Positions 22,272-39,900 of a DNA stretch of 64,000 bases are shown piece by piece (the first letter of the stretch is position 1; every line of letters starts with the position of its first letter). The DNA lies in the NCBI GenBank assembly GCA_037447605.1, contig CM074821.1, forward strand, positions 1,178,001 to 1,242,000. The letters run 5' to 3'. The notes under the pieces are model-generated. The model saw nothing but the letters and a program-made list of their open reading frames with translations, was not told where the DNA came from and ran no database searches. The translations under genes and the position numbers were made by a program. The stretch comes from Zygnema circumcarinatum SAG 698-1b (taxonomy: Eukaryota; Plantae; Zygnematophyceae).

Positions 22272-23693
22272 TAGGAGCTGGATTGCTTGGTGAGTGCAAG
22301 TTCTGCCTTTTTCTAGCATTCAGACAATGCATGGAACTCTAATCTTCCAGCATTGAGCCCTCAGGGTGCCAGCTAGGATGTTATTCATGTTCTGGCGAGG
22401 CTTCTCAGGCGCATCTGCATTCGTGCTGTTGAGAGACAGAACTGTCTCCTTGCTTGCCGATCGAAATGTTTATTTTTTTCGTTTTTAAGCAACAGTTTCA
22501 CAATCTTTGCTGTTTGCAGGGGCATGCACGACTTTACACGGGAGGGAAGGATTTGTGGAAGGCTTCTTGAGATGTTGTGAATCAGCCCAACTTCAGTTCA
22601 GTGCAAATTGTCAGGGATGGTGAGGCGATCTAATCGACATGATTTCCAACTCAGTTTTTGTCGGCTCTTGTTACTCTGGAGACCTTTTTTGATACGATTG
22701 GAAACGGCACGCGGACCCTCTATTCAAGGGTCTGCATGTGACCAGAAGTTATCTATTGATGGAACCCTAAGATCCAGATTATCAGAGATTAAATGGTTCC
22801 CTATCATCATTTGATGTATTGCTCGCCCGCATCCAGGAGCTATTGTTGCTTTAAGGGAACCTTATACAAAGTATTTTTTTTCAGTAATTGACTATCCATT
22901 TTAATGACTCTTATCAGTATCAGGACGGCCATCTCATGTAGATGCTTTTCACATTGTTATGCCGCTGCCCTGATTTTACCTATTTTATTCTGGGATCCAC
23001 CAGTATGTGCACACATTGAGTGGATCCCCAGATCCACCTCTTCCTTCCCCCTTCTCCCTTCCCCTTCTCTCATAGCCCTGAACCCAAAATGTCGCCTTGG
23101 TGATTTCTGCACCTTCGCCACTAAGTTACAGAGGTATCATATTCTTTATTTGCTAAAGAAGATCCAAAGAAATTCAAAGTGAATGCTTAGTAAATGTCAC
23201 GGTTACAGCTAAACATTTTGAGCATTTTAACATGTTTTCGGAAAATGTTATTTTTATTTAATCAATTCAATAATATTGAATATGCGATGCGGAGATTTGG
23301 ATCTTTTCTCGTTAAGGTTGAACACAAATGTTCAAATAGTTCATTCACAGGTGTAGATTCAAACCTTTTGCGGCTTACAACTCAGATAATGGATTCGTCA
23401 GAAGGGGAATTCAAATTTTCCAATATCCCAAAACAACCAAAAGAAGAATACCCTAAAAGGCTTTATTATAGAACAAAGTAGACGCGGCTCAAAAGGAGGA
23501 ACCACAATCAAACGGAACTAAACACGTCTCCTTCCAAAGCCCCCTCCATTCTGCCTAAAAAATCATAAAGAAATAAACAATGGACTCGATATAAGTGCTG
23601 CTTGTAGATTGTATATATGGGTACCTAGACTGCTTTAGCTACATACATTATTCTCTCCCTATTTTAATAGAGTGATTCCTCACTCCCCAGCCC

Positions 23694-26600
23694 TCACAGG
23701 CGTCTCAACACTTCCACAGGCACAGAGAGGAAGGCCGCAGGCTTCCCCAGCTTGAGCTCAAATTCAGCGACTGCAGATGCCCCTCCCCTCCCCATCCCCT
23801 TCTCCCTCCCCATCGTAACTCCCTCGTCCGAGGAATCACCACCATCCAATCGCCCGTTTCCAGCATGCCCATTTACAACAGGCACGCCACCCTCCCACCG
23901 GCTGTACCCTCTCTCTTCCTCCCTCCCTCTCTCTTCCTCCCTCCCTCTCTCCCTCTCGCTATCTTCCCACTCCTCTGTCTCCCATCGCAGATCCATCGCC
24001 TCTTCCATGAAGCTCTGCAGCTCATCGGAGTGTTCCGCGGATCGTGTCCGCATAAGCGGTGTGTGTATTCGCTGCACTGTGATTGGTCGAAAAAGAGCTA
24101 TTCCCACAGGTTCATGCCAGGACTTTCCATCGCTCCCTAAAGTCACTTTTGCAGGCCTGTGTGAGATGAAGGACTTTTGTCCCCCCCCTCCTCCCCTCCC
24201 CTTCCCCCTTCCTGGCCAGCTTGCTCCATCTACCACTCTTCCAGAAGGGTTCCAATACACTTTTTGCTTCTCTTCAGAGCCAAACTTCCCAGAGTCCTCT
24301 GTCAGATCAACATACTGCTTGCCCAGAAACACATCGTCGGCTGACTTTCTCCTCCCTCCCGTCTCTCTCCCTGTCTCTCTGCCCATTTTCTCCTCCTCTG
24401 CTGCTAGCAGCTGTGACTTCTTCTCAAGCTTCCTCGTGAGAGCCTCCCTCTGTTCGATGATATCGACTGTCGCCTGTGTTAAGGGCACCACCGTGCCATC
24501 TCCCCGAAGAAGTCTAAGCCCCCCCTCTCTCCAATCATACAAATCCTCCTCAACCTCTACCTGCCTCACCACTTTGCTGCTTCCTTTCCTCCCACTCGGC
24601 CCACTCTCCTGATGCCCACTCGACTGTGTATGCTCAATTCTCTCTCCCACAGTGCCATCCCCCCTATTGTTTGCTCGAGATGCCCCTTCTCCCGATCTCC
24701 ACCTTCTCGCTTCACTCTCCTGCCTCCTTTCCTCTTTCGTTGCCGCCTCTTCTGACACCTCTCTTCCCTCATTCGGAAAGTTCGCAGGCTCTGCAAGAGT
24801 CTGCAAGTCTCCCGAGAATTTCGCTCTTGTTCCTGCCGCTCCTTTTGCAGCAGAATTCAAAACTGCCATGCTCTGCTTTATTTTTCTCGCCTGCTTTTCC
24901 GCTGCAAACTGTCCTTCTAACATAGGTCGACTGCGGTCTAAACTCGGATCCTGTGCTGCAGACTCCTCTACAGACCAGGAAACTTTCTGGCGGGAAGAGG
25001 GGGGACCCCCCTTGGAAGCAGAAGAAGCAGCTGCAGGAGGAGGAGGAGGAGGGAGGATGACCTCCTCCCCCTGCTGCATGTCTGAGCTTAGAGGAGAGAC
25101 ACGCACAGGACCCGGAAATGCTAAGTCCTTCAAACGGTTTCCTGGGCCTTCTGCACCATACCTCTTTCTCCTTGAATGTTTCTGAGCGGCATATTGCCCT
25201 TCAGAAATAGTCTGGCTGCGTTCCAAACTGGGCTCCAAACCGCTCTCATCGTCTTCCGCAATTGGGTATGTCGAAGTTAACGCTGCCGACTTCTTTCTCG
25301 GCAAAGTTCTCTTATCTACGGAAGCCCCTTGGCGGCTCTCTGTAGCAGAAAGTACCATCCGAACTGCACCTCTGCTTTCGTGCGAATCCTCCTTCAATTT
25401 GCCATGTGGCCCATTGGCATTTGAGACTCCACTCCCCGCTCCCAATTTCTTTCTCCTCGCCTGCTTCGACGCTGCAAACTGCCCCTCCGAAATACTCTCA
25501 CAGCGGTCTAAGCTGGGCTCCTCTTCTACGAAACTCCTACCAAATTCCCCCTTTTTTGCGCTCCTTCCTTCTTCAGGACCTCTCGACCTCACACGACTCT
25601 CCGGCACATTCATCCTGCTCCCATCTTCCGCTCTGTTATAAGACCCCCCACCTCCCCCTCCGAGTCGCTTCTTCCTCACTCTCTTCTGCGCTGCAAACTG
25701 ACCCTCTGAAATAGTCTGACTCCTATCCAAGCTCGGCACCCCCCCAATATCACTTTCTACATCCGAACGTCTCGACAAGTTTCCCCACCCTTCCTGCCCC
25801 CCTCCCTCCTCCTCTCCCTCCTCCAAACTCATCTTACTAAGAGCCGCTGCAGGCGGCCTTCTCCTCAATTGGAGCCGCGAGAATGCCGGCTCCTTGAAAG
25901 TAAAAAATGACCCCTCACTGCCTGTAACAGAATGCATGTCATGCTCAAGCCGTACAGTTCCTACAGAGTGCCGCAATCGACCAATCATGCGCTGCCAGCA
26001 AGTCAGCTCTCCGGGCCCGGGGCCCACTCCTGCCTCGAAATATAACTGCTGCCCAGAAGACTCCAAACTATCTGAAGAAGCCATTACAGGCTGTGAGCCC
26101 CTCATAATGCAGGGCTGCCTTTCTGCAGAAGCATCTCCCCATAAATGCGCACAGTTCAATTCAGCAGAAGAATTTGATTTAGTTCTCTCACAGCAGGAGA
26201 GCCGCGGGAGGATATGGCTCTGGTGAACTGCATAGGCTCGAGGGGGAGACTGCTGCGACTGCGAAGTCGCAGTGTCTGAGAACCGCAGCTTTTCCATAGA
26301 GCGTGGCTTTGAAACTTTCAGGCTTCCAGACTGCGGCCCCCCTCCATTCCGCCGCATCTCCTTGTCTCCAAATTTGCGCATCCAAGCCCTGTGAGCTTGT
26401 GCAATCACGGTCACAGCCAGCTGGCAGTCACCCGCGGTGCCGTCGAGCCCAAAATACACTTCAGGATCACCTGCTCCCACCGTTTATTAAGCAAATTAAA
26501 ACGTAATTCAGCATTTTCAGGAAAGAAAGCCTCAAGCCTCAAGCTAAGAAGCCCTAAGAATGCACCCTCCACAAGTGCCGAAGACGCCCCTGCCATCCCA

Positions 26601-27534
26601 TAAAGCCAGCCCCACTTGCAACAAAGCCCAAATATTAGGGCTAAAATAATATTAATATTATTAAGGCGTTTTTCTTACCAGACTGCTTCCACATGCACGT
26701 CCTTAGCCACTCCCACACATCTCCCAGAGCCTCCGGCATCTTCTCCTGAATGTCATCCACATTATTGAGCTCCCCAGCTATCGGATCATCTAGCGCAATG
26801 GCAATAACCTTCCAAGACAGCGTGGAGCCGCCATGGATTACTGCAAAAGCGGCAAGAGGCTTTGCCGCGTACACCTGCCCCGTTCTTGCAGGCCTCCCCC
26901 CTATGTCCAAAACCTCCAGAGGCAACCCGTCTTGCTGAACCCCGTCTGAAGCTCCCTGAGGGTCCGCCCATGTCTGCGGAAGCAGCCCCACGTGGCAGGG
27001 AGGGTTGGACGTGTAGTATGCGGGCCGGCCGGGCTGCTTGCTGAGCTTCAAGGGGGTGCAGGCCTCGTCCTTGGCGGCTTCGAAGATGAAGCCCGAGTCC
27101 CGGGGGGTCTTGCAGACCGCGTGAAGCGCACCGAGCTCCTCCGCATACAGGGAGATGCCGTGCCAAGGCGAGACCTCGCGGCAGCTGCGCCACTCGAATA
27201 TGCGCGCGCGGTAGCTCAGGCTGCCGGGCTTGCCGGACTCCACGATCTGGTAGGAGGGGAGCTCGGGGATGGGGGAGAGGAGGGGGGAGGGGGAGGAGGC
27301 GCGCGGCTTGGAGGGCTTCGAGAGGGACTCAGGGGAGGGAGAGGGGGGGGCGAGGAGGGGCCCGCCCTCCATGGCGGAGAGGGAGGAGGGAGGGAGGGAG
27401 GGAGGAAGGAGGGCAGGGAGGGAGAGAGTAGGGGGGGAGGGGGAAGGAGCGTTGATTGAGGATCCACTGAAGGGATCGGATCCACCTAATTTTGGATCAA
27501 CTGGCGGTGGAATCGAGTGGTGATCTGGGGCCAC
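23694..27534 (-). CDS. Two-exon gene: degenerate family-I inorganic pyrophosphatase domain plus ~885-aa low-complexity tail with four internal repeats
   Basis: Exon 1 27534 (or 27372) to 26679, phase-1 intron 26678-26471 (GTAAG...GAGCAG), exon 2 26470-23694. The PPase-like sequence (SPWHG, GLLPQTWADP, WKVIAI, DDP) continues across the junction as GDPEVYFGL...AVTVIAQAHRAW. Confidence 0.85.
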
Positions 27535-29214
27535 ACGTCCGGGGCTCAGCGGGCGTCGGCGAGCCCGGAGGAGCCCGGCAGATGCGACATGGGTCTAGTA
27601 AGACAAACAAGTACGAATAGACGTACGGCCTGCTTTTTAGCTTGTCATGTAGTGAGGGACTTGTCGGCGGGGACGGGATCCAGATGGGCCATGCCAGCTG
27701 GATTAGTACCGATTAGAGATTCGGGTGGGCCATGACAGCTGGATTCGTACTTTCTTGTCCTCCTAAAAAGGAGCTGAGGCAATCAGAGACAGGCTTGACG
27801 CGTGCAAAGAATCTAGGTTTTTGATGTTTTTCATGAGTAATAAATGTCAAGATTCTGAAAAGCGCCATGTTCGGACCACCAGAGCCCGCCGTACAGAGAT
27901 GAACAGTGCCGTACATAAATGTGTACGATACGTACGGACCAATCCCGGGGCGCGAAATGTTCGCTTAATTATTGTTGCCCGAAAAGGACCGATCGAAGTT
28001 TGACCGGAAATTTGGAAGCCGACGTGGCCGTATAGGCGATCCTACGTGGCGTAATTAAACCAATCAAAGTATGCCACGCGCAGAATTGTGCCAGCGTGAC
28101 AATGTCGTCAATGGACAACCACAACATTGTCGAGCATGTCCTAATTCTGATTGGCCTCGTCCTTGACGCTTTTTATACACGTGGCAGGTTTCCATTGGAC
28201 GGCATCTGGTCAAAGTTGGTGGCCGACCAGTAGCCGTACAATATTTCGGTTCTTGACAAGTCACAATTTTTGCCGGTCGGCGCCAAAGTTACCGTACATA
28301 ATTATACGACAAATCCCGCCCTTCCCACCAACTGTAGCCGGCCACCGGCAGTGGAAGTAACCGGCCGCCTGGGCCAGCTGGCGAGTTGCAGTCAGCGGCC
28401 GGCAGGTCACGCTCAAATGATTGCGCGCGGCTGCCGGCCGGCAGCGCCTGGCCGGCGCGGCTGGCCTGGGCCTGAGCGGCACCGACAGGGCGGCCGTGCC
28501 ACCTTGCGGCCCTGAGGCTGTGCCACGTGGCGGCCAGTGACGCCTGCATCGTGGGCGCCACGTGGAGCCTGGCGGCGGCCGGGGGAGGGAGGGGCGGCCG
28601 CGCACGGCGGCCTGACGAGGGCAGTTCTGCGTTGGGGCTGATGGGGGGCCGTACGGTAAGTCCGTACGGTACGAAATGGGAGAGCCGTACAACAGTGGGC
28701 GCCATCGAGCGACCCATGCGGCCATTGGCCATGGCCATGCACCTCGTTCATGTGCACATGTCACCATGGGAAGTGGCTCTAGGGAATGCTTGCACGTATG
28801 GGAAGGTTGGGGCAGGAGGGCGTGTCAGACTTTGACATTGCGCGGCGGGATTCATGCAACACCATTACTGTTGGATGGATCTGACTCGCCCGTCTAAACT
28901 TGCTAGGAGAGCATGTACCAACTCGTTTTGAACCGACATGTTCGGAAAATGTAGAAGCTAGGACACGCCCTACATGACAAACAAATTGGCATTGTCCTTG
29001 CGATGACGATGCTATGAAAATGGACATGCACAACAACAACATCATGTTGAACCAAGATTAGCCGCTAGCAAGGTTTGAACCACGCCTTATGGGCAAAGGT
29101 ACTATGAACATGGGATGAGTGGCGGACACCATCATGTCATCAAGCCAATCCATCATACGTGCCATGGGTCGGCCGAGCATCCATGGTGCCCATTATTACC
29201 ATACATTGACCACG

Positions 29215-29292
29215 ACCTGACCATGCCCATGACCTGACCATGCCCATGACCTGACCATGACTATGCCCATGATCATGACCTGACCATGCCTA
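29215..29292. repeat. Short tandem repeat with ~17-bp unit (ccatgcccatgacctga)
   Basis: Directly visible just upstream of SHPRH. Confidence 0.85.
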
Positions 29293-29360
29293 TGACCATG
29301 ACCATGAGAGCTTGGAGCAGGAACGAGCCTGGCGGAGCATTTCCTCAGATAACTGGCGTC

Positions 29361-30906
29361 ATGGGCGGGAGGAAGCAGGCGGCCCCTCAGCGCAGCCATG
29401 GCGGCCTCAGCCATGGCCACTCAGGCCCCACACCGCAGCTGGCAGCTCCAGAAGTTCCGTCTGCTCAGCTCTCGCCTTCTGGAAATCGCCGGGGGGAGAC
29501 CAAACATGGCGACCATGGCGACAAGTCTGACGAAACCGCGCAGGATTTGGAGAGCTCCAGAAATTTTAGGGTGTGGAGCGTTGTGGAATTTTCTGCTAAC
29601 GTTGAAGAAGGAGAAGGAGAAGGATTTCAAGTGGCTGAGATAACAGAGCTTGTTGCTGTTCCTGGAGGAAGAGCTGCGGGAGAGGGAGAGGGCGGAGAGA
29701 GTGAGACTACGGGAGAGAGGGCGTCACCTCAAGGGGGACTGCTTCAGGATTCGCCACTGCTTCTTCGACTATGGCTCGCAAAAGCAAAAAAAACTGTGAG
29801 TAAGCGCTTTTCAAGGCGGACCGAGGATTTGCTACTTGAGATACTTCCCAGCTCAAAAGAAACAATAAAAAAGGAGTTCACGGAACCGGAATGCGGAAGG
29901 TCTGCGCTGTTTTTTGGACGAATAAACGGTTCAGATGAAGAGGTTGCAGCATTAGGGGAGCTGATCCTGGAGAAGAGGGTAATCCTAAAAGTAGTGAGTA
30001 GAAGCAGCAGCAGCTTCCAAACACAGCCCCCTGAAAGCAGCAATGCGACATCCTTCTCTCTGTTAGTCACTATTACTCCTCTTGCGTTATCGGACTCCCC
30101 TGAGCACCCGTTCAGTGCAGCACAGCTGGCTTTACACAAATATATGGCCACACTCATAACTTGGCTCCGCCCAGAACATGCAGCGGAGGCGGTGCTAAAC
30201 ACGCCGACGTCAAATGTTATGGTTGCAAATAAAGTGGCATTTGAAAAAGGTGCAGCTGATGATGGTGGTACGGAGGAGTCGGAGGTTCTGGAATCAAGTC
30301 ACGTTGGGGAGCAGGAAACGCCTGCATGCTCTCGACTTCGAGTCCCGAACGACATCGGGAGGGAGAAGGCCAACGAAGGAGACTTTGATCCTGAGGAGCT
30401 TTACGCAGCGGTGAAGCCGACGGGGTGCGTTTTTAGAAATGCTCAGTGCGGAGATGCAGTGTTTTAGTAGACGTAATTGAGTCCGGGAGAGAAGCAAACC
30501 TGTAGCTATTTTCTTTATATTGGGATGATTCGGTTCGTCAATGCCAGAAGGACTTTCTTCACTTTAGTGCAAGAGAAAATTTGAAACAGTACTACGCTAC
30601 TTTAAAGTAAGAATTGACCCAAGCGAATGTTTGACGGCATCACAGGATGCACAAGTTCTCGTCCACCAGCTCTTGACTTTAAAGTGCTCTGCCGGTTTTA
30701 AGGATCGTTTTTCCTTTTTATATCAATCACATGCTGTTACTATAGTAACAGCAGACTAGCATATTCCTCCGTTTTCAGGTCGTTTTTTCTAGTTTGGCTT
30801 GGCTGCTTGCCCACGACTGAACTTTTCCTTAAATTTTGTTTTTTCATTTTCTTTCGAAGGTTATAACGTGTCTATTCGATACGATCAAGTCCCACTAGAC
30901 ATACAT

Positions 30907-30979
<73 letters not shown>

Positions 30980-33900
30980 TTTATACGTTTTTTCTAGCTT
31001 CAAGAACCTTCGTATCCCCGCGTAGAGTCCCAACATTTGGCAAAATGCTGAGCATGCGTCTGACGGGGTGGCAGGCAGGAGGAGCAGCTGGAGGGGAGTC
31101 TCCCGGAGCTGCTGCCTGAGCTGCGCCCCTATCAGCGCAGGGCAGCACTCTGGATGCTGCAAAGGGAGGGTCGGAGGCATCTCCTACATCGCTCTCCTGC
31201 ACTGAGCGCTGATAGTGATGTTTCAAGTATTAAAGACGAGGAAGTTCAACTTGGCGAACGCGGCTTAATGGATGAAAAAGTGCACTATCTTTGGAGGAAA
31301 ATGTGTTCCTTGGAGGGAGGCCAACAAGTGCTGTACAACCCTTTTACGTAAGCTCTGTTCCTTTTTCGCACGTTGAACCTGAATCATGACTTTGTTACAC
31401 GGAGGGTTTGCAACTTTGGCTGTGCTTATGTAAAGCACACCGTCTATTCATTAGTAGCTAGTCTGCTGGTTTGATGGTGTCTGTTCAGAGGCCGATTTTC
31501 AGTAAACACTTTTGAACCTTTGGAGGATGTTCGAGGAGGCATTTTAGCTGACGAGATGGGCCTTGGGAAGACTGTGGAGCTGCTCGCCTGCATTGTGGCC
31601 CATCGCCGAGGGGGGCCCCCTGTGGCAGCAGCGGAGGCGAGGGAGAGAGTGGAGAGGTTGCTGAGAGAGAGGAGGAGGGAGAGGGTTGGGTGCCCGTGTG
31701 GGACTGAGGAGAGTGGAGGAGAGCGGCAGGCTGCTGACCTATGGGTTCAGTGTGACTCCTGCCTTGCATGGCAGCATGCGGCATGCGTGGGGTACAGACC
31801 TGCTTCAAAGAATATGAAAGATACTAGCTGTAAATATGAACTCAAAGTTGGCAGCTCTTGTTTGAAGGAAGTTGAATTAGACCAAGGTAAGGTGCAGGAA
31901 AAGGAGTTGTGTGCTGATGGTGCTGTAGGAGGAGGCTGCAAAGTTGGGCTGGAGACTGACCTGAGGTCAGAGGAAGAATGCGTAGATAGTACTAAGGTCC
32001 GGGAATACACCCCATCAACGAAATCCAAACGGAGAGCAATCAAGGTGGTAGGGACGGGAAGTGGGGGAGAAGTGAGGGAGAGTGGGAGGCCGCAGAAGAG
32101 GAAGAGAGAAGCGTCTGCAGCAGCAGACGCGAGCTCAAGCAGTAAGAGAAAGGGTGTTCCTCGGGTCTTGGAAGGAGGTGAAGTGAGGGAGGAGACGCCA
32201 ATGGCTGAGGCTGAGGAAGATGGAGGTGAAAGATTTATGTGTGGAGAGTGCTCTCAGATTGTGGGAGGCACGAAGGTAGAAGGGGAGTGTGGAGCCACCT
32301 TGGTGGTTTGCCCTGCTGCAATTCTGCAGCAGTGGCAGGACGAGATTCTCAGGTACAATGCTCCTAGACACAGAGAGTGAAGATTTATCTTGTGTTGATG
32401 TTAAGGCTTTGAACCCCTCTCAAAGTCAATGAAGAAAACAGAGGATGGGAAGGGGGTTTTGGCCTGCAGGCAAGTTCGACCTGGGGCACTGCGAGTGGTG
32501 GTGTACCACGGGGTTCAGACAGGCTGGTCGATCATATCCGCACGGAGCGGTAGCGGCAGCGGGAGAGAAGGGGGCAGAGAGGAGGAGGAGAGAGGAGCTG
32601 CTTTAGTGGGAGCTTACGACCTAGCAGGGGCAGACATTGTTCTCACAACCTACGATACTTTGCGCACTGACCTTGCACACGACTGTCAACAGGCAGAAGC
32701 CCGGAACATGCGCTTCCAGAAAAGGTTCATACTTCTTCCAAAACCCTAACAGTTCGAATCCCTCGAAACCTTAGATCCCTTCTAGTTCGTCACCCCTTCT
32801 ATTGCGTCTCAACACTTCACTGCGCTTCAATATGAAGACTTTGCTCTTCAACATGAAACCTTTGCTCTTCAATATGAAGACTATGCTCTTCAACATGAAA
32901 CCTTTGCTCTTCAATATGAAGACTATGCTCTTCAACATGAAACCTTTGCTCTTCAATATGAAGACTATGCTCTTCAACATGAAACCTTTGCTCTTCAATA
33001 TGAAGACTATGCTCTTCAACATGAAACCTTGGCACTTCAATACGAAGACTATGCTCTTCAACTTGAAACCTTTGCACTTCAATACGAAGACTATGCACTT
33101 CAACATGAAACCTTTGCTCTTCAATACGAAAACTATGAAATGCGGTGGTTCTGAGTATGAATGTGTGGGAGGGGGTGCAGGTATCATGTGGTGCCCTCAC
33201 CCTTAACAAGGCTGTGCTGGTGGAGGGTGTGTTTGGATGAAGCGCAGCTTGTAGAGCGATCGACAGCAAGAGCTGCAGAGATGGCTCTCCGCCTCTCAGC
33301 TGTAAACAGATGGTGTATTAGTGGAACGCCCCTTCAAAGGGGATTGGATGATCTCTATGGGCTGCTCTCCTTTCTGAGGGCGGAGCCTTTCTGTCACCGA
33401 CATTGGTGGACACGTGTCCTGCACCGCCCCTATCAGGTGAGCTATTATAGAAATGCTGGAGAGAATATGCGAGAATGTTGACGACTTGGGAGGGGAAGAA
33501 TGGGAGAATCTGCCTTGCAGACACCCGCAGTTCTAAGGGCAGTATTTCCGAAGTCTTGTTGTGATTTGAAGATTTCTGAAGTTTAAGACTTGGAAACCCT
33601 TCAACTTTATAAAAATTGAAATCAGCTTGAGGACGACAAAAACCTGCTATCGTTGGTATCTTCAGAAATTTTGTAACCCAAATCCATGCAACCCTAACCC
33701 TGAACCATCTGCACTGCCCCCCTTCTTCCAAAGTTTTGCCCCTCCCCTGCCCGTCTTAATGCATTTCAAACTCCAAGGAGTTTTCTTGCTGAAATGTATG
33801 ATTGTTTATGCTGCTGCAGGAGGGTGCTCTGGGTGCTAAGGAGTGCATGCACTCCTTCCTACGAGCCCTCATGTGGCGACATTCAAAGGCAGATGTTGCC

Positions 33901-36900
33901 TCTGAGCTTAACCTCCCCCCTCAGCAGGTCTTACTCTCCAGACTCCACTTCTCTCCCGTAGAAGCTCACTTCTATGGTCGCCAGCATCAAGCCTGCGCAT
34001 CGACAGCACAAGAGATCATTTCACGGCATATGCGATCGAAGCTTAAGTTTTCCCAAAAGCATGAAAAAGCACTTCAATTTGAGGAAACTCCTGTGAAAGT
34101 GAATCACGGGGATGAGAGCGAATGCAGGTCCTTAGTCACTGCAGTTTCGAACACGGAGTCGACCAAAAAGTCTGGGGAAAGTATCGGTATGAGAAAGAGT
34201 TTGGAGCAATCTGCTCTCTCTCATTCAGAACTTGCAAAGCTGGCAGGGCCCCTTTTGAGACTTCGGCAAGCATGCTGTCACCCTCAGGTTGGAATGGCAG
34301 GGCTCCGTTCTCTGCAAACAGGTCGGCAACCTATGAGCATGGATGAGGTTCTGCAGGTAAGCCCTTTGAAGATTGGGGATAGGAGGATTAGAGTTTCAAT
34401 GATTCAAGGACAGTAAGAAGAAGAAACTATCTTTGGGTTTCCTTAAATAATGTATCGGTCGTTTTCTGCGTGTTTTTCTATGCATGATTTGTGAAGGTGC
34501 TGATAGACAAGGCGCGACTGGAAGCAGAAGAAGCCCAACGGCTGCTTATAAGTGCTTTGAATGGGCTTGCGGCTTTGGCGGCACTTGAAGGGTCAAAATT
34601 GCAAGCAGTGGAATGCTATCGGGAAGCAATTCGAATAGCAGAGGAAAATTCTGCTGAGTTTAGATCAGACCCTTTGCAGAAGCTGCACACTCTGCACAAC
34701 TTAGCCCTACAGCTCGGCCTCAATCCCTCTTATAACCCTGAAAATTCAACAGGAAAAAATAGAGGTGTTTCAGAGGAGGGGCAGGATGCTAGTTGCTTGC
34801 ATGAAGGAGAATTAGAGAAGGAGTTAGACAAGAATTTGAATAAGGAGGTTAAGGGAATAGAGAGGTGGGGAGTGGCACGGACTCTTCGAGATGAGCTGCT
34901 TGTACAACAGTGTATAGAAATTCGAGAAAAATATATGGGGCCTTTCCATGCCAAGCTCGCTGCTGCTCAGAAAGAGTTCGAGCGTCTCAACAAACAGGTG
35001 CAACTTTTACCCCTGTCTGCTTCAATCTAAGTTTAGGGAAAAAAATGTGAAGTGGGAAATGAATGGGGGAGCACCAAAACAAAACAAAGCTCCCTCCCTT
35101 ACCCCCTACTCCTCTCTCTTGCCCTCCCTATTCTTTTTCATTTTTGAAAAATGCATGCGCAGATGCGTGAGGCTGAAGCAGCAGTGAAACGACAAGATGG
35201 GGTCTCTCCTTGGTGGCTTTCTGCCTTAGCCATAGCGGCTAAAGGAGCTGATGGAGGGAGAGATCTTGCCTCCCGTTTGAAAGGCTCTCTCTTAGAGACA
35301 GGCCACCTTGGAGCAGGCCATCAAAATGCTTCCAGTATAGCACTCCGGTAAACCATTTAACCCCTTCAATTCCTTCAATGGCTCCAAATTTCTTACCACT
35401 TCAAACCCTTCAATGGTTCCAAAGTCCTAACTTACCCCTAATTACCCTAAAAACCCTAAAAACCCTAATTACACCCACTTATCAGAGGGAGAAGGGAGGG
35501 TGGGAGGGCAGGTTCGATACTATCCATGGCCTCCAGTTGGTCTTGCAGAGGGAGCTGCAAGCCATAGAAAAAGGGAGAGCAGCAGTGCTTAGTTCTTTGA
35601 GCTTATTGGCGAAAAAGGTGGATCAGCAGGATGCTATTGCAGTGGAGGAAATTGCAAATTGCAGAGTCTGCGATTCCAATATGAAAGGCCCCCCTTGTGA
35701 GCACTGCCGCCTGCAAGAGCTTTTTGAGGTAAGAAATGAAGGGGCCCTGCTAATCTTGTTGAGTTTCTGCTTTACTTGTTTACCTGTGTTTGGCTAGAAG
35801 TGGGGTTGGGTCTTGTTTGCAGGCAAAAGTGCTCTCAATTCGCCTTCTTTTTGTAATGTTTGTTTTTTTTTATCAAATATGTTTTTGGGGTGTGTGGTTA
35901 TTGCCCAGCACTACGAAGCTCGACTGTTTCTGTTGAGAACTACGGCTGCAGAGAGAGGGACTCTTGTGTCGGCTTCTGAGGCAGTACGGGCACAACAGAA
36001 ACGTGATGGGGGAGCCTTAAATTCCGCTCGCCGGAATGTGGGATCAACTGGTGTTTCCTCAGTACAAGTAAAACCGAAAAACTCTAAAATATCTTAGAAA
36101 AAAGTCAATATTTCATCGGGGGGGGGGGGGGGGNNNNNNNNNNGGGGGGGGGGAGTGGGGGGAAACCCAGATTTCTGAAATGGCTAAAGAGCATGAATTC
36201 TCTTGCCGAATATGTGAAATTTCTATCTGTGCTGAAGATTTGAGAGGACATTTTGCAATGGGGGAGGGGACAGGTTACTTGGGCACCCTCAGAGACGGAG
36301 AGGCTCCTACGATTGCTTTCTGGGAGTCTGCGCTTGCTACCAGGAGGGAGGGGAGAGGGAGAGAGAGAAGGAGAGAGTCTCGCAGCGGCAGCCAAGAGAC
36401 ATCTGGATGTGTGCGAGGTGGGAGAGAGAGAGAAGCTGTGGATGCCTGAAACTTTGGGAGAACTTTGTTTGAACTTTGTTTGTTTGTTTGCCCCTCTTCA
36501 ATGTGGCTTTGGCAGTTCATTTGTTGATTTGGGTGAAGGAAGGAACCGATTTGATTGCAATGTTTCTTCTGTGAATGCGAGAAATAGAGCTTATCTACTA
36601 AAACGAAGCGACTACTACTACTACCGCTACTGTTACTGCTATTGCTACTATTACTACTATTATTACTATTACTATTACTATTGCTATTGCTGTTGCTGCT
36701 GTTGCCACTCTTTAAAGGGATTATGTATATATTTTACCATGCAGGCAATGCGGCGAGAATTTGGAGCTGCTCGAGCTCAAGCAGAGGCTCAGCGACAAGT
36801 CTTGAGGGCTTTGGATGAACTGCACATGGCCACCACGAGACTCCGTCTGCTCTGTCCCGAGGAGGAGGAGGGAGAGAGTGGGAGAGGGAGAGGGAGAGGA

Positions 36901-39900
36901 GTGGAGGAACGCATCTCGCTCCTCCCTGCAGAGATTCCGCAAATGAGTGTTCAATTCACGCAGGATAAGTTTGCAGCTCTGGAAGCTCTGAAAAAGGCTC
37001 AGTCCCAACTGCGATATTTGAAGGTAATTTTACTCTGCCTTTCTCTGGAAAAGGAGCAGAAAAATGAGGTTCAAAGTCAAAGTCGAAGTCTGTGTGCATA
37101 TGTGCAGATACATGTGAAATATGTTAACGCAGCTTAAGATCTTGCCTTTGTGTTTTTGGGGGAATAAGCTGAAATGTTTAGGGCCAATATGTTGAATGTT
37201 GGGGGTAGCAGGGACTGGCAGCTGCTCGGCAGCGAGGAGCGGGAGAGGAAGGAAGGAGAGAGGAGGAGGATATCTGTCCTATCTGCAGGGAGGGGCAGGG
37301 AGAGGGAGAGCGCGCTGTGCTGTACTGTGGCCACCTGCTCTGCATTCGCTGTACAGCATCATAAAACAAACCCTTAAGAACTGACCCGAAGGAAACTCTC
37401 AACTTAGAATACTATAAACAATGAAGTCCTAAGGTTGTCAGTTTATTATCCAAATCTGGAGGGAAGGAGAGTGGGAGGTAGGGAGACATGGAAGGAAGGA
37501 GCAAGGGAGGGAGATTCCCAGTAGACCCCGTTAGCTTGCTTTCTCCATTCCCACTATCTTAGCCCCCCCCAGCTAATCCTGTAGACTTCCCGCACACCCT
37601 AAGGTGCTTTTAGGGTTTGGATAATTTTTCGCAGGCTTTCTGCGCATGGCGGAGGCTACGAAAGATGGCCACGTGGCATGCCCTTCATGCCGAAGCCGCC
37701 AGGTGGTGGCTGACGTGGCGATCACTCAGCCAATGGGGAGCAGTTCCGCTCTGTCGGAGGAGGAGGCCATGGAGGCGAGTGTGGAGGTGAAGGGGTCGTA
37801 TGGAACTAAGGTCAGGAGCGAACTGCATAGGATATGGGAGTAGTGGGGGTGGGAGGGAGGGAGAGGGAGATGGTAATAAAAGGGAAAGTGAAAAAAAAAA
37901 CTGTTGACAAGATGTCCGCAATTAGAGTTTTTTTCACAAGCGTGAAGTTAAAGAACTTAGGGAATTGTGCAGAAAGGTTGTAATTGTGGACTTGTCAGTA
38001 AGGATTGACTAGTTTTCTGTTTTGAAAAGGGTTTTTTTGGTACTGAGGGATGCAAAGCTATAGATTTCATCATCTCTTCTTATTGGGTGTGCAATCGGCT
38101 CGCGGAATAGCGAAAGAAATCTGAAGAAAGATCAAATTCAGGAAACTAATGGGCTTTCAATATTTTCAGATTGAAGCTGTTCTACGACGACTGAAGCGAA
38201 TTTTACTACAAAATGCGGAGGCCAAAATTTTAGTATTCAGCAGCTGGGAGGAGGTCCTCTCTCTCGTAGAGCATGCCTTGCAAGCCAACTCCATCAGCTA
38301 TGCTCGAGGCAGAGGGAGAAGGTAAGGGAATCTCAATGTACTCCCTTCAACCAGCATTTACCCCATAGACATTCCTTTCAAACTCCTCTGAAGAAGGTCA
38401 TTTGTTCGGTCCTCAAACTAGGGAGCTCAAGACCCTTAGAATCACCTGCTTTTTCTCCAGTTCCAAGCGTTCTACTAAGTCTAAGACTCTTGCAGGTTGA
38501 AGACAGAGGTTTGACCTAACTTCAAGTCCCTCATTTCGGCTGCAGAAGTTTGAGTGAAGCCATTAGCCTGTTCAGAGGAGAGGGTGCAGTCCTGAAAGAC
38601 CCACAAAGTGGTTGGAAACGATCGAGGACCCCAAAAACCCGCCTTTTCTATACTGGGGCTGAGCCCTTCTTAGGGGGTGTTGAGGAGGGAGAGGCTTCTG
38701 GAATTGCGGTTTTGCTGCTTCCTGTGAAGGAGGGGGCCAATGGGCTGAACCTGGTGGAGGCGCAGCATGTGTTTCTCATCGAGCCTCTTCTGAACACGGC
38801 GGCGGAAGCGCAGGCTGTGAATCGCGTGCACCGGATTGGCCAGAAATTGCCGACTTTTGTTCATCGTTTCATTGTAAGCTTTCGTACTCCAACGCCCTTA
38901 TACATACATACATACATACATACCTACTCACAAACAAACATAGACACATATGTACATATTATATTACATACATACATACATACATACATATATACATAGA
39001 TACATACATACATACCTACCCACAAACACACATAGACACATATGTACATACACCATGTATGTATGTATTTATGTTATGTGTGTATGTGGGTATGTTATTT
39101 ATGTTATGTATGACTGTGTATATGCCTATTATCCTCGATAGAATGTATACATGTCTCCTGCTCATGCTTCCTAAGTGAAGGAGGTAAGAGACGCAGAGGA
39201 AGGGTTTTATAGCCATTGTTGAATGCAGGTTCATGGCGGGCAACTGAGAAGCTGTTTGCTGTATTGTTCAATGGAGCAGTCTGCATGGATGGCTCCGCTC
39301 AATAGATAGTACTGCCATGTTTGCGGTGCCCTATGAGTTTCTTGTCATTGTCTTTACTTGAAGTTTTGCTATCTCCTCTTGTTTTGTCCGACTACAGAAG
39401 CTCCCAAACATAGTTTGCAGAATTCCGAGCAGCTTAGCTGATTAGAGAAAATACATATCTCAGTTTGTATTGTGTACTTTTGTCTCAAAATTGAAAAAGG
39501 TACATTAAGATAGTAAGGGTTTTTCGCCGCCGCAACATTATTGTATCAAATATTGCCACCAGCTTGCTGACCGTAAATCAAATGCTGTCTATCCGTTCTG
39601 CTGGTTGTCGGGTTCCTTCGTTTTCTTTTGGCTTTTTTTTAGGTTGGAAGAATTTCACTTGACGGTTTCCTTAGAAGCCTTAGCACCACCCAAGCTCTTG
39701 ATAAAGTCATTGAGTTGAAGCGAAGGGTGGTCCTCCAGATAGACTTCATTTTTTTTTTTTTTTTTCCCCTGAATCCTTGCAAGCCATATTCATGCCTCGA
39801 TATAAACGATGCTTGTTGGGTTTGAACACTGTTTGGAAGTGTTTCTCTATAGACGCAATCAGTCTGTCAGAAAAAGATTAGAGGGGGGGGGGGGAGGGGA

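Follow-up and report, generated by a model that had tools for sequence, protein, structure and literature searches.

The canonical soluble pyrophosphatase (PPase; EC 3.6.1.1) of eukaryotes is a homodimer, and the plastid PPases of the green lineage (Arabidopsis PPA6, Chlamydomonas IPP1) are of the eukaryote-type family I, to which yeast Ipp1 and human PPA1 also belong. The trypanosomatid PPase VSP1, whose extra region is an EF-hand domain, is active. Here we describe a relative of these enzymes encoded in the alga Zygnema circumcarinatum SAG 698-1b (Zygnematophyceae), within a window of 64,000 nucleotides (nt; assembly GCA_037447605.1, contig CM074821.1, positions 1,178,001 to 1,242,000 of the forward strand; all positions below are those of the window). 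An earlier note, made from the letters of this DNA without database searches, had proposed that the minus strand encodes a catalytically degenerate PPase fused to a long disordered tail. We found this pseudo-PPase locus to be a real, expressed two-exon nuclear gene for a protein of 1156 amino acids (aa), and the reading of its product as a pseudoenzyme is well supported. A search of the literature found no published description of a degenerate PPase family or of any pseudoenzyme on the PPase fold; the counter-case named in the earlier note, a family already described, thus did not materialize, and the Zygnema protein is a pseudoenzyme on a fold from which none had been reported before.

The PPase-like domain occupies residues ~41-262 (26379-27252, minus strand, split by the intron) and is confidently predicted to adopt the beta-barrel fold of a family-I PPase. 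It matched Pfam family PF00719 with 53.8 bits (expectation value, E, 2.4e-14), exceeding the gathering cut-off of 23.5, and a search of the sequences of solved structures retrieved yeast Ipp1 chains with E 3e-22 over residues 100-280 of the open reading frame (ORF). AlphaFold2, supplied with a 75-sequence alignment, modeled the exon-1 residues 34-231 with a predicted local distance difference test score (pLDDT) of 95 and a predicted template modeling score (pTM) of 0.90. Foldseek superposed the domain model on the PPases of T. brucei, human, yeast, Toxoplasma and Plasmodium with template modeling (TM) scores of 0.85-0.88 and root-mean-square deviations of 1.6-2.4 Å. The folded domain anticipated in the earlier note is thus supported, as is its observation that the first residues of exon 2 align without gaps to the C-terminal helix of PPases: within this stretch they follow the canonical C-terminal segment DGKPxNxFGLxE...THxxW. 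The structural motifs it had listed as retained (SPWH, LPQTW, WK, DDP) are also present, together with the H..W pattern of the C-terminal helix, and at 42 non-catalytic positions conserved in canonical and degenerate proteins alike, the Zygnema protein keeps the conserved residue at 37.

The catalytic site has fared very differently. We aligned 148 domains with MAFFT and called canonical those rows holding 12 or 13 of the 13 catalytic residues (62 rows, most with all 13). In the 13 catalytic columns the Zygnema protein reads KIEAVDLEHSKCM against the canonical EKERYDDDDDKYK, retaining E58, D115 and K154 only (yeast Ipp1 numbering, used throughout). The ten replacements, E48K, K56I, R78A, Y93V, D117L, D120E, D147H, D152S, Y192C and K193M, are identical to those that the earlier note had listed. 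The D-x-D-x-x-D metal-binding signature reads D-G-L-P-L-E, leaving the 13-residue catalytic set incomplete; three metal ligands (D117, D147 and D152) are gone, as is the entire substrate-binding quartet of K56, R78, Y192 and K193. For yeast PPase it is established that even one conservative substitution at these positions cripples the enzyme, and the variants E48D, Y93F, D115E, D117E, D120E/N, D152E and R78K occur among the solved structures matched by the domain. Retention of 3/13 catalytic residues against 37/42 other conserved positions differs with Fisher p = 2e-5, and by this comparison the active site is selectively dismantled and the fold spared. Because the ten changes include three aspartate ligands and all four substrate-binding residues, the domain should neither hydrolyze pyrophosphate (PPi) nor bind it in the canonical way. 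The loss of K56, R78, Y192 and K193 also makes a role as PPi sensor unlikely, which speaks against PPi as the ligand of the sensing module that the earlier note had entertained; its description of a degenerate active site in an open frame holds, the gene being intact and spliced.

The two ORFs on which the gene model was built, of 297 aa (26641-27534) and 928 aa (23694-26480), are both present on the minus strand. They are joined by a GT-AG intron of 208 nt in phase 1 (26471-26678; GT at 26678-26677 and AG at 26472-26471 of the minus-strand sequence), with the context ...AAG CAG TCT G/GTAAG...GGGAGCAG/GT GAT CCT..., slashes marking the boundaries. Its removal yields the junction ...WKQS-G-DPEVYFGLDG, in which the split codon specifies Gly232. 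We placed transcript contigs of four public runs from three studies on 22800-28300, and contigs of all four runs cross the junction proposed in the earlier note, skipping exactly the 208 nt between 26468 and 26677; the junction ends read CT..AC on the plus strand, and a cut shifted by +2 fits equally well. Contig depth is zero within the intron and also across 27400-28135, and at 23168-23351 it is zero in three of the four runs and 2.8 in run X3. Since depth falls to zero in the intron and in intergenic DNA, the contigs represent transcripts and not DNA.

Coding sequence begins at the first in-frame ATG (27372-27370, in the context GCCATGG), from which exon 1 supplies 231 codons and one nucleotide (26679-27372) and exon 2 two nucleotides, 924 codons and the stop codon at 23694-23696 (23694-26470), the latter encoding the last PPase helix and a tail of ~890 aa. 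The spliced coding sequence of 3471 nt gives 1156 aa (231+1+924), so the joined product predicted earlier is upheld while its estimated length of ~1160-1210 aa is slightly too great. In the contigs exon 2 is unbroken between 26468 and 23336-23404 and shows no further joint or intron, which places a 3′ untranslated region (UTR) of ~290-360 nt at 23336-23693; the transcribed gene as seen spans 23336-27372 (minus strand), its 5′ UTR reaching upstream of 27372. The contigs apparently stop at ~27270, bordering a (GAGG)n repeat (27279-27449) that was skipped in contig placement, and hold 94-143 additional unplaced letters beyond this point. An upstream intron at ~27270 was considered and rejected, there being no AG acceptor at 27271-27272 and the stop coinciding with the masked repeat. 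Because the contigs end at the skipped repeat, carry unplaced letters and meet no acceptor there, the transcript most likely runs on past the ATG at 27372. Short contigs of runs X1 and X3 touch both 24183-24200 and 25799-25824, on opposite strands and with loose ends; they are probably assembly chimeras rather than alternative transcripts, because both places are CT-rich and of low complexity.

The Zygnema protein belongs to a large group of degenerate relatives. We searched 1.84 billion representative proteins exhaustively with HMMER, obtained 1340 matches and examined the best 150; among these, ~65 clusters (50% identity) are degenerate in the same manner, with 0-4 of the 13 catalytic residues. 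The nearest degenerate relatives are 41-48% identical to the Zygnema domain (130-172 bits), 48% being the maximum for any relative, and most canonical PPases commonly 31-37%. An unrooted FastTree phylogeny of 138 domains, a quick tree with Shimodaira-Hasegawa (SH)-like support and without bootstrap, separates with 100% SH-like support a branch of 65 rows, including the Zygnema protein (64 degenerate and one with 6/13), from 73 canonical or intermediate rows. The degenerate rows thus appear to form one group, for which the tree gives no dated origin. The architecture that the earlier note had found unfamiliar, and a candidate for a new scaffold, is therefore not unique to this locus: it recurs in a clade of ~65 clusters, half of them long-tailed and with conserved replacements.

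The remodeled site is itself conserved. Among 68 degenerate alignment rows, the Zygnema protein included, D120 is replaced by Glu in 48, D152 by Ser, Ala or Thr in 59, Y192 by Cys in 38, R78 by Ala or Ser in 43 and E48 by Lys or Thr in 44, while E58 is kept in 51 and K154 in 55. The Zygnema protein carries the commonest residue of the clade at E48, E58, R78, D115, D120, D152, K154 and Y192, and with K48, A78, E120, S152, C192, E58 and K154 it displays the remodeled site typical of the clade. Y168 (94%), T89, W126, E153 and Leu223 are additional positions conserved specifically in the clade; K56 varies (E, R, K, Q), and Arg or Gly frequently replaces D117. Because the replacement residues are themselves conserved, they point to a remodeled, selected surface and not to decay. 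Degenerate proteins are also long, 35/68 rows reaching at least 600 aa versus 2/62 canonical rows (canonical median 356 aa), with the PPase-like domain usually at or near the N-terminus and followed by a long low-complexity tail, as in the Zygnema protein with its domain at residues 41-262 of 1156.

We looked up names for 30 of the ~65 clusters. All 14 named members are from Zygnematophyceae: Closterium (7), Mesotaenium endlicherianum (5), Netrium digitus and Spirogloea muscicola, with at least five paralogues in M. endlicherianum, and their labels read only "unnamed protein product" or "hypothetical protein". The other clusters looked up derive from unlabeled transcriptomes, Logan assemblies and metagenome assemblies of the ENA, and among the 30 no land-plant or chlorophyte member was found. 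Two further searches for named members, one with a 22-sequence alignment and one region-restricted with relative P0007, gave three matches each, probably because low-complexity words crowded out candidates, and we accordingly base the taxonomic range on the cluster look-ups. We regard the clade as old and diversified, without a published description, and with all its named members in Zygnematophyceae.

Several other matches of the search may be noted. P0001 (NCBI source, an 18,685-bp contig) is 5113 aa long with 18 PPase-like stretches, the best of them degenerate (TKDVVDHTLSY--, 2/13), and was excluded from the tree. Two to four tandem PPase domains are found in P0014, P0026 and P0067 (980-1320 aa) and in P0004, P0005 and P0016 (532-672 aa), where the scored domain is canonical or nearly so (11-13/13) in five and holds 8/13 in P0016. 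A small intermediate set with 7-8 of the 13 catalytic residues (P0034, P0101, P0115, P0149 and P0041) suggests that the active site was also partly lost on other, independent occasions.

The C-terminal tail of ~890 aa is rich in Gly, Ser, Glu and Arg. Its frame is certainly coding, because an opening of 928 codons has a chance probability of ~8e-21 at its own composition and stops number 37 and 39 in the other two frames of the strand. The ORFs lying opposite the tail on the plus strand (286 aa, 177 aa and others) are not genes; their richness in Ser, Pro and Leu merely mirrors the purine-rich coding strand. As the earlier note had proposed, the tail is predicted to be mostly disordered: a charge-hydropathy scan is largely disorder-like, and a single-sequence model, weak evidence either way, gives pLDDT below 50 for 764/924 residues. 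The same weak model places the best-scoring part of the tail, a short hairpin and long helix with pLDDT 62-89, at residues ~882-934 (24363-24521, minus strand), and a long acidic/Arg-rich helix with pLDDT 59-85 at residues ~1046-1086 (23907-24029, minus strand).

Within the tail we identified a motif in four copies, starting at residues 477, 550, 645 and 740, with the consensus P-S-L-[DE]-R-x-x-[ST]-I-S-E-G-Q-[FY]-A-A-x-K followed by a Lys/Arg cluster. On the minus strand, copy 1 (residues 477-503, 25656-25736) reads PSLDRSQTISEGQFAAQKRVRKKRLGG, copy 2 (residues 550-576, 25437-25517) PSLDRCESISEGQFAASKQARRKKLGA, copy 3 (residues 645-671, 25152-25232) PSLERSQTISEGQYAAQKHSRRKRYGA and copy 4 (residues 740-766, 24867-24947) PSLDRSRPMLEGQFAAEKQARKIKQSM. 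A putative site of the basophilic-kinase type, L-x-R-x-x-S/T, is present in three of the four copies, succeeded by EGQ-[FY]-AA and then the basic cluster; copy 4 deviates, with Pro for Ser/Thr at the putative phospho-site and Met-Leu for Ile-Ser, and overlaps a helix that starts at residue 748 in the single-sequence model. We take L-x-R-x-x-S/T to be the minimal target sequence recognized by CDPK, SnRK and AMPK-type kinases, overlapping 14-3-3 mode-1 sites, and the aromatic-Ala-Ala element with its basic cluster presumably resembles a nuclear-localization signal or a basic amphipathic helix binding calmodulin or an acidic ligand. In the six pairwise comparisons of a 19-codon core (Nei-Gojobori), the proportion of synonymous differences (pS) is 0.60-0.99, which is saturated, and that of non-synonymous differences (pN) 0.12-0.20. 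Since synonymous sites are saturated while non-synonymous differences stay low, the copies are old and under purifying selection for the peptide rather than the DNA; pN far below pS also shows independently that the frame is translated.

These data are best accommodated by an expressed pseudoenzyme of 1156 aa in which a non-catalytic PPase domain serves for docking and the tail acts as a multivalent, possibly phospho-regulated partner-binding region, a reading to which we assign a probability of roughly 65%. In such a protein the dead domain would neither turn over nor bind PPi and would act as a folded docking unit, and the tail would provide a multivalent platform of several equivalent binding or localization modules that recruits or localizes partners, the modules possibly being switched by phosphorylation. 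That the domain functions as an interaction module, as the earlier note had suggested, is plausible and a reasonable inference.

Several observations weigh against the docking-domain reading. The scaffold mechanism is deduced from the anatomy of the protein alone, and no orthologue more than 50% identical to the domain was found. The conserved D115, E120, S152, K154 and E58 could still hold one metal or another small ligand, so that a new catalytic or ligand-binding role is conceivable. The whole tail is without a detectable homologue: a word-indexed search with its 924 aa returned no match, not even the protein itself; phmmer comparison with the tails of relatives gave nothing at E <1e-3; a language-model atlas search with the C-terminal third gave scores of at most 0.63, which are uninformative; and a Pfam scan recognized no family in it. 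Among relatives only the first 45-70 residues past the domain are conserved, and this extension of ~50 aa was undetected in the Zygnema protein by BLAST (E <1e-4), where it has possibly diverged or disappeared. The tails of the family evolve fast, and that of the Zygnema protein appears lineage-specific. Likewise, a hidden Markov model (HMM) of the four motif copies scored no higher in 49 degenerate relatives than in canonical controls, the sequence 'NRTISEGGYQRRRVS' of P0012 bearing a weak resemblance only, so that the motif may be specific to the paralogue or lineage. The phospho-site, nuclear-import and calmodulin readings of the motif, finally, come from likeness to consensus motifs.

A different account of the same pocket is that the domain has a new specificity, as an enzyme or as a sensor of a small ligand, and the tail is regulatory, the candidates being a phospho-monoester, polyphosphate, an inositol pyrophosphate or a metal bound by K48, E58, D115, E120, S152, K154 and C192. 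In its favor, the replacements are shared across the clade instead of random (E120 in 48/68, Ser/Ala/Thr at 152 in 59/68, C192 in 38/68 and K154 in 55/68) and accompanied by the clade-specific Y168 (94%), T89, W126 and E153, and one metal site retains two of its three ligand positions (D115, and D120 as Glu). However, all four canonical basic or aromatic substrate-binding residues and three Asp ligands are missing, and no coherent new catalytic constellation emerges around the variable K56 (E, R, K or Q) and D117 (often Arg or Gly), so that we judge a new specificity unlikely. Alternatively, the protein might regulate an active soluble PPase, the dead domain pairing with the canonical enzyme so as to inhibit or activate it or to change its location. 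Pseudoenzymes commonly act by regulating an active paralogue, the fold is nearly intact in the AlphaFold model and by Foldseek, and the tree derives the family from a eukaryote-type PPase; however, the contact of the yeast dimer, which we take to involve W52 and the C-terminal W279 segment and use as a lead only, is not conserved: position 52 holds Asp in the Zygnema protein and mostly Gly across the clade, and the C-terminal extension was undetected, which makes pairing of this kind quite improbable. A transcribed, decaying duplicate with a meaningless low-complexity tail would explain the loss of 10/13 catalytic residues and a tail without homologues, but is hardly credible given an intact frame of 1156 codons (P ~8e-21 for the tail alone), clean splicing in four runs, retention of 37/42 conserved non-catalytic positions with a model pLDDT of 95, a remodeled site common to ~65 divergent clusters, and pN far below pS among the motif copies.

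The docking-domain reading can be extended, tentatively and at well below even odds, to the family as a whole: the dead-PPase proteins would be a family of signaling scaffolds whose remodeled pocket binds a new ligand or partner, and the four modules of the Zygnema protein a new phospho-switched multivalent short linear motif. The lineage in which the family has so far been seen is the algal sister lineage of land plants, and partners of the modules could be, for example, 14-3-3, importin, calmodulin or nucleic acid. The PPase fold joins the list of folds that have yielded pseudoenzymes, and the Zygnema protein offers a concrete object in its confidently folded domain, conserved remodeled pocket and repeated peptide motif under purifying selection. 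Databases tag the family "Pyrophosphatase" or "hypothetical", although, judged from the alignment, PPi hydrolysis is almost certainly absent, and its recognition corrects both functional annotation and the reading of Gene Ontology (GO) enrichments. The GO term "pyrophosphatase activity" is enriched among 1,359 orthogroups specific to Zygnematophyceae (Feng et al. 2024, PMC11096116), whose text supplements do not mention the family. This term is broad, and the enrichment may in part represent dead-PPase proteins automatically annotated as enzymes; if the family does consist of scaffolds, the published enrichment would partly reflect non-enzymes.

Upstream of the domain, residues 1-40 (27253-27372, minus strand) form a Ser/Pro/Leu-rich stretch (P 30%, S 25%). 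Within this stretch, LSPIPE at residues 32-37 (27262-27279, minus strand) matches what we take to be the motif, L-x-x-I-x-E, for docking to the PP2A-B56 phosphatase; LSPIPE is not conserved in the N-termini of relatives and may be a chance match in a stretch of this composition. We rejected the possibility of a transposon-borne gene, as the flanks are without transposon domains. Directly downstream of the 3′ UTR, 22800-23011 holds the end of a far more abundant transcript, with a contig word depth of 266-1397 versus 17-115 for the pseudo-PPase gene. On the other side, 27400-28300 has almost no transcript cover in the four runs, and the region at 27600-30500 is G+C-rich (0.56), with 13-19-bp tandem repeats at 28433-28481 and an ATG-initiated ORF of 393 aa at 29286-30467 without a Pfam match. 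The nearest recognizable neighbor is a set of SNF2-related and PHD-finger ORF fragments at 31520-37137 on the plus strand (E 2e-15 and 7e-9), probably a multi-exon chromatin-remodeler gene.

Compared with known systems, the Zygnema protein shares the fold of the eukaryote-type family-I PPases (yeast Ipp1, human PPA1) at ~30-32% identity, but it keeps only E58, D115 and K154 of their catalytic set, lies on the other side of the branch with 100% SH-like support, and continues into a disordered tail of ~890 aa where the canonical median length is 356 aa. It resembles the degenerate clade, exemplified by Closterium CAI5526166.1 (1176 aa), M. endlicherianum ME000124S00201 (2006 aa) and ME000420S07042, S. 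muscicola SM000001S04607 and N. digitus EP00270_P008978, in its N-terminal domain followed by a long low-complexity tail and in the replacements at E48, R78, D120, D152 and Y192; it differs in its own tail and four-copy motif and in reading CMW where many members have CxC after WLR. The best structural match is the trypanosomatid acidocalcisomal/vacuolar VSP1 (PDB 5cuy, 5cuu), which likewise combines a family-I PPase domain with an extra region; in VSP1, however, the extra sequence is N-terminal of the PPase domain, whereas the part added in the Zygnema protein is a C-terminal disordered tail and the catalytic set is gone. In retaining its fold under selection after loss of the catalytic residues, the protein follows the logic of other pseudoenzymes, such as the pseudophosphatases STYX and the dead myotubularins and the pseudokinases, which are built on other folds and often serve as scaffolds or regulators of active paralogues.

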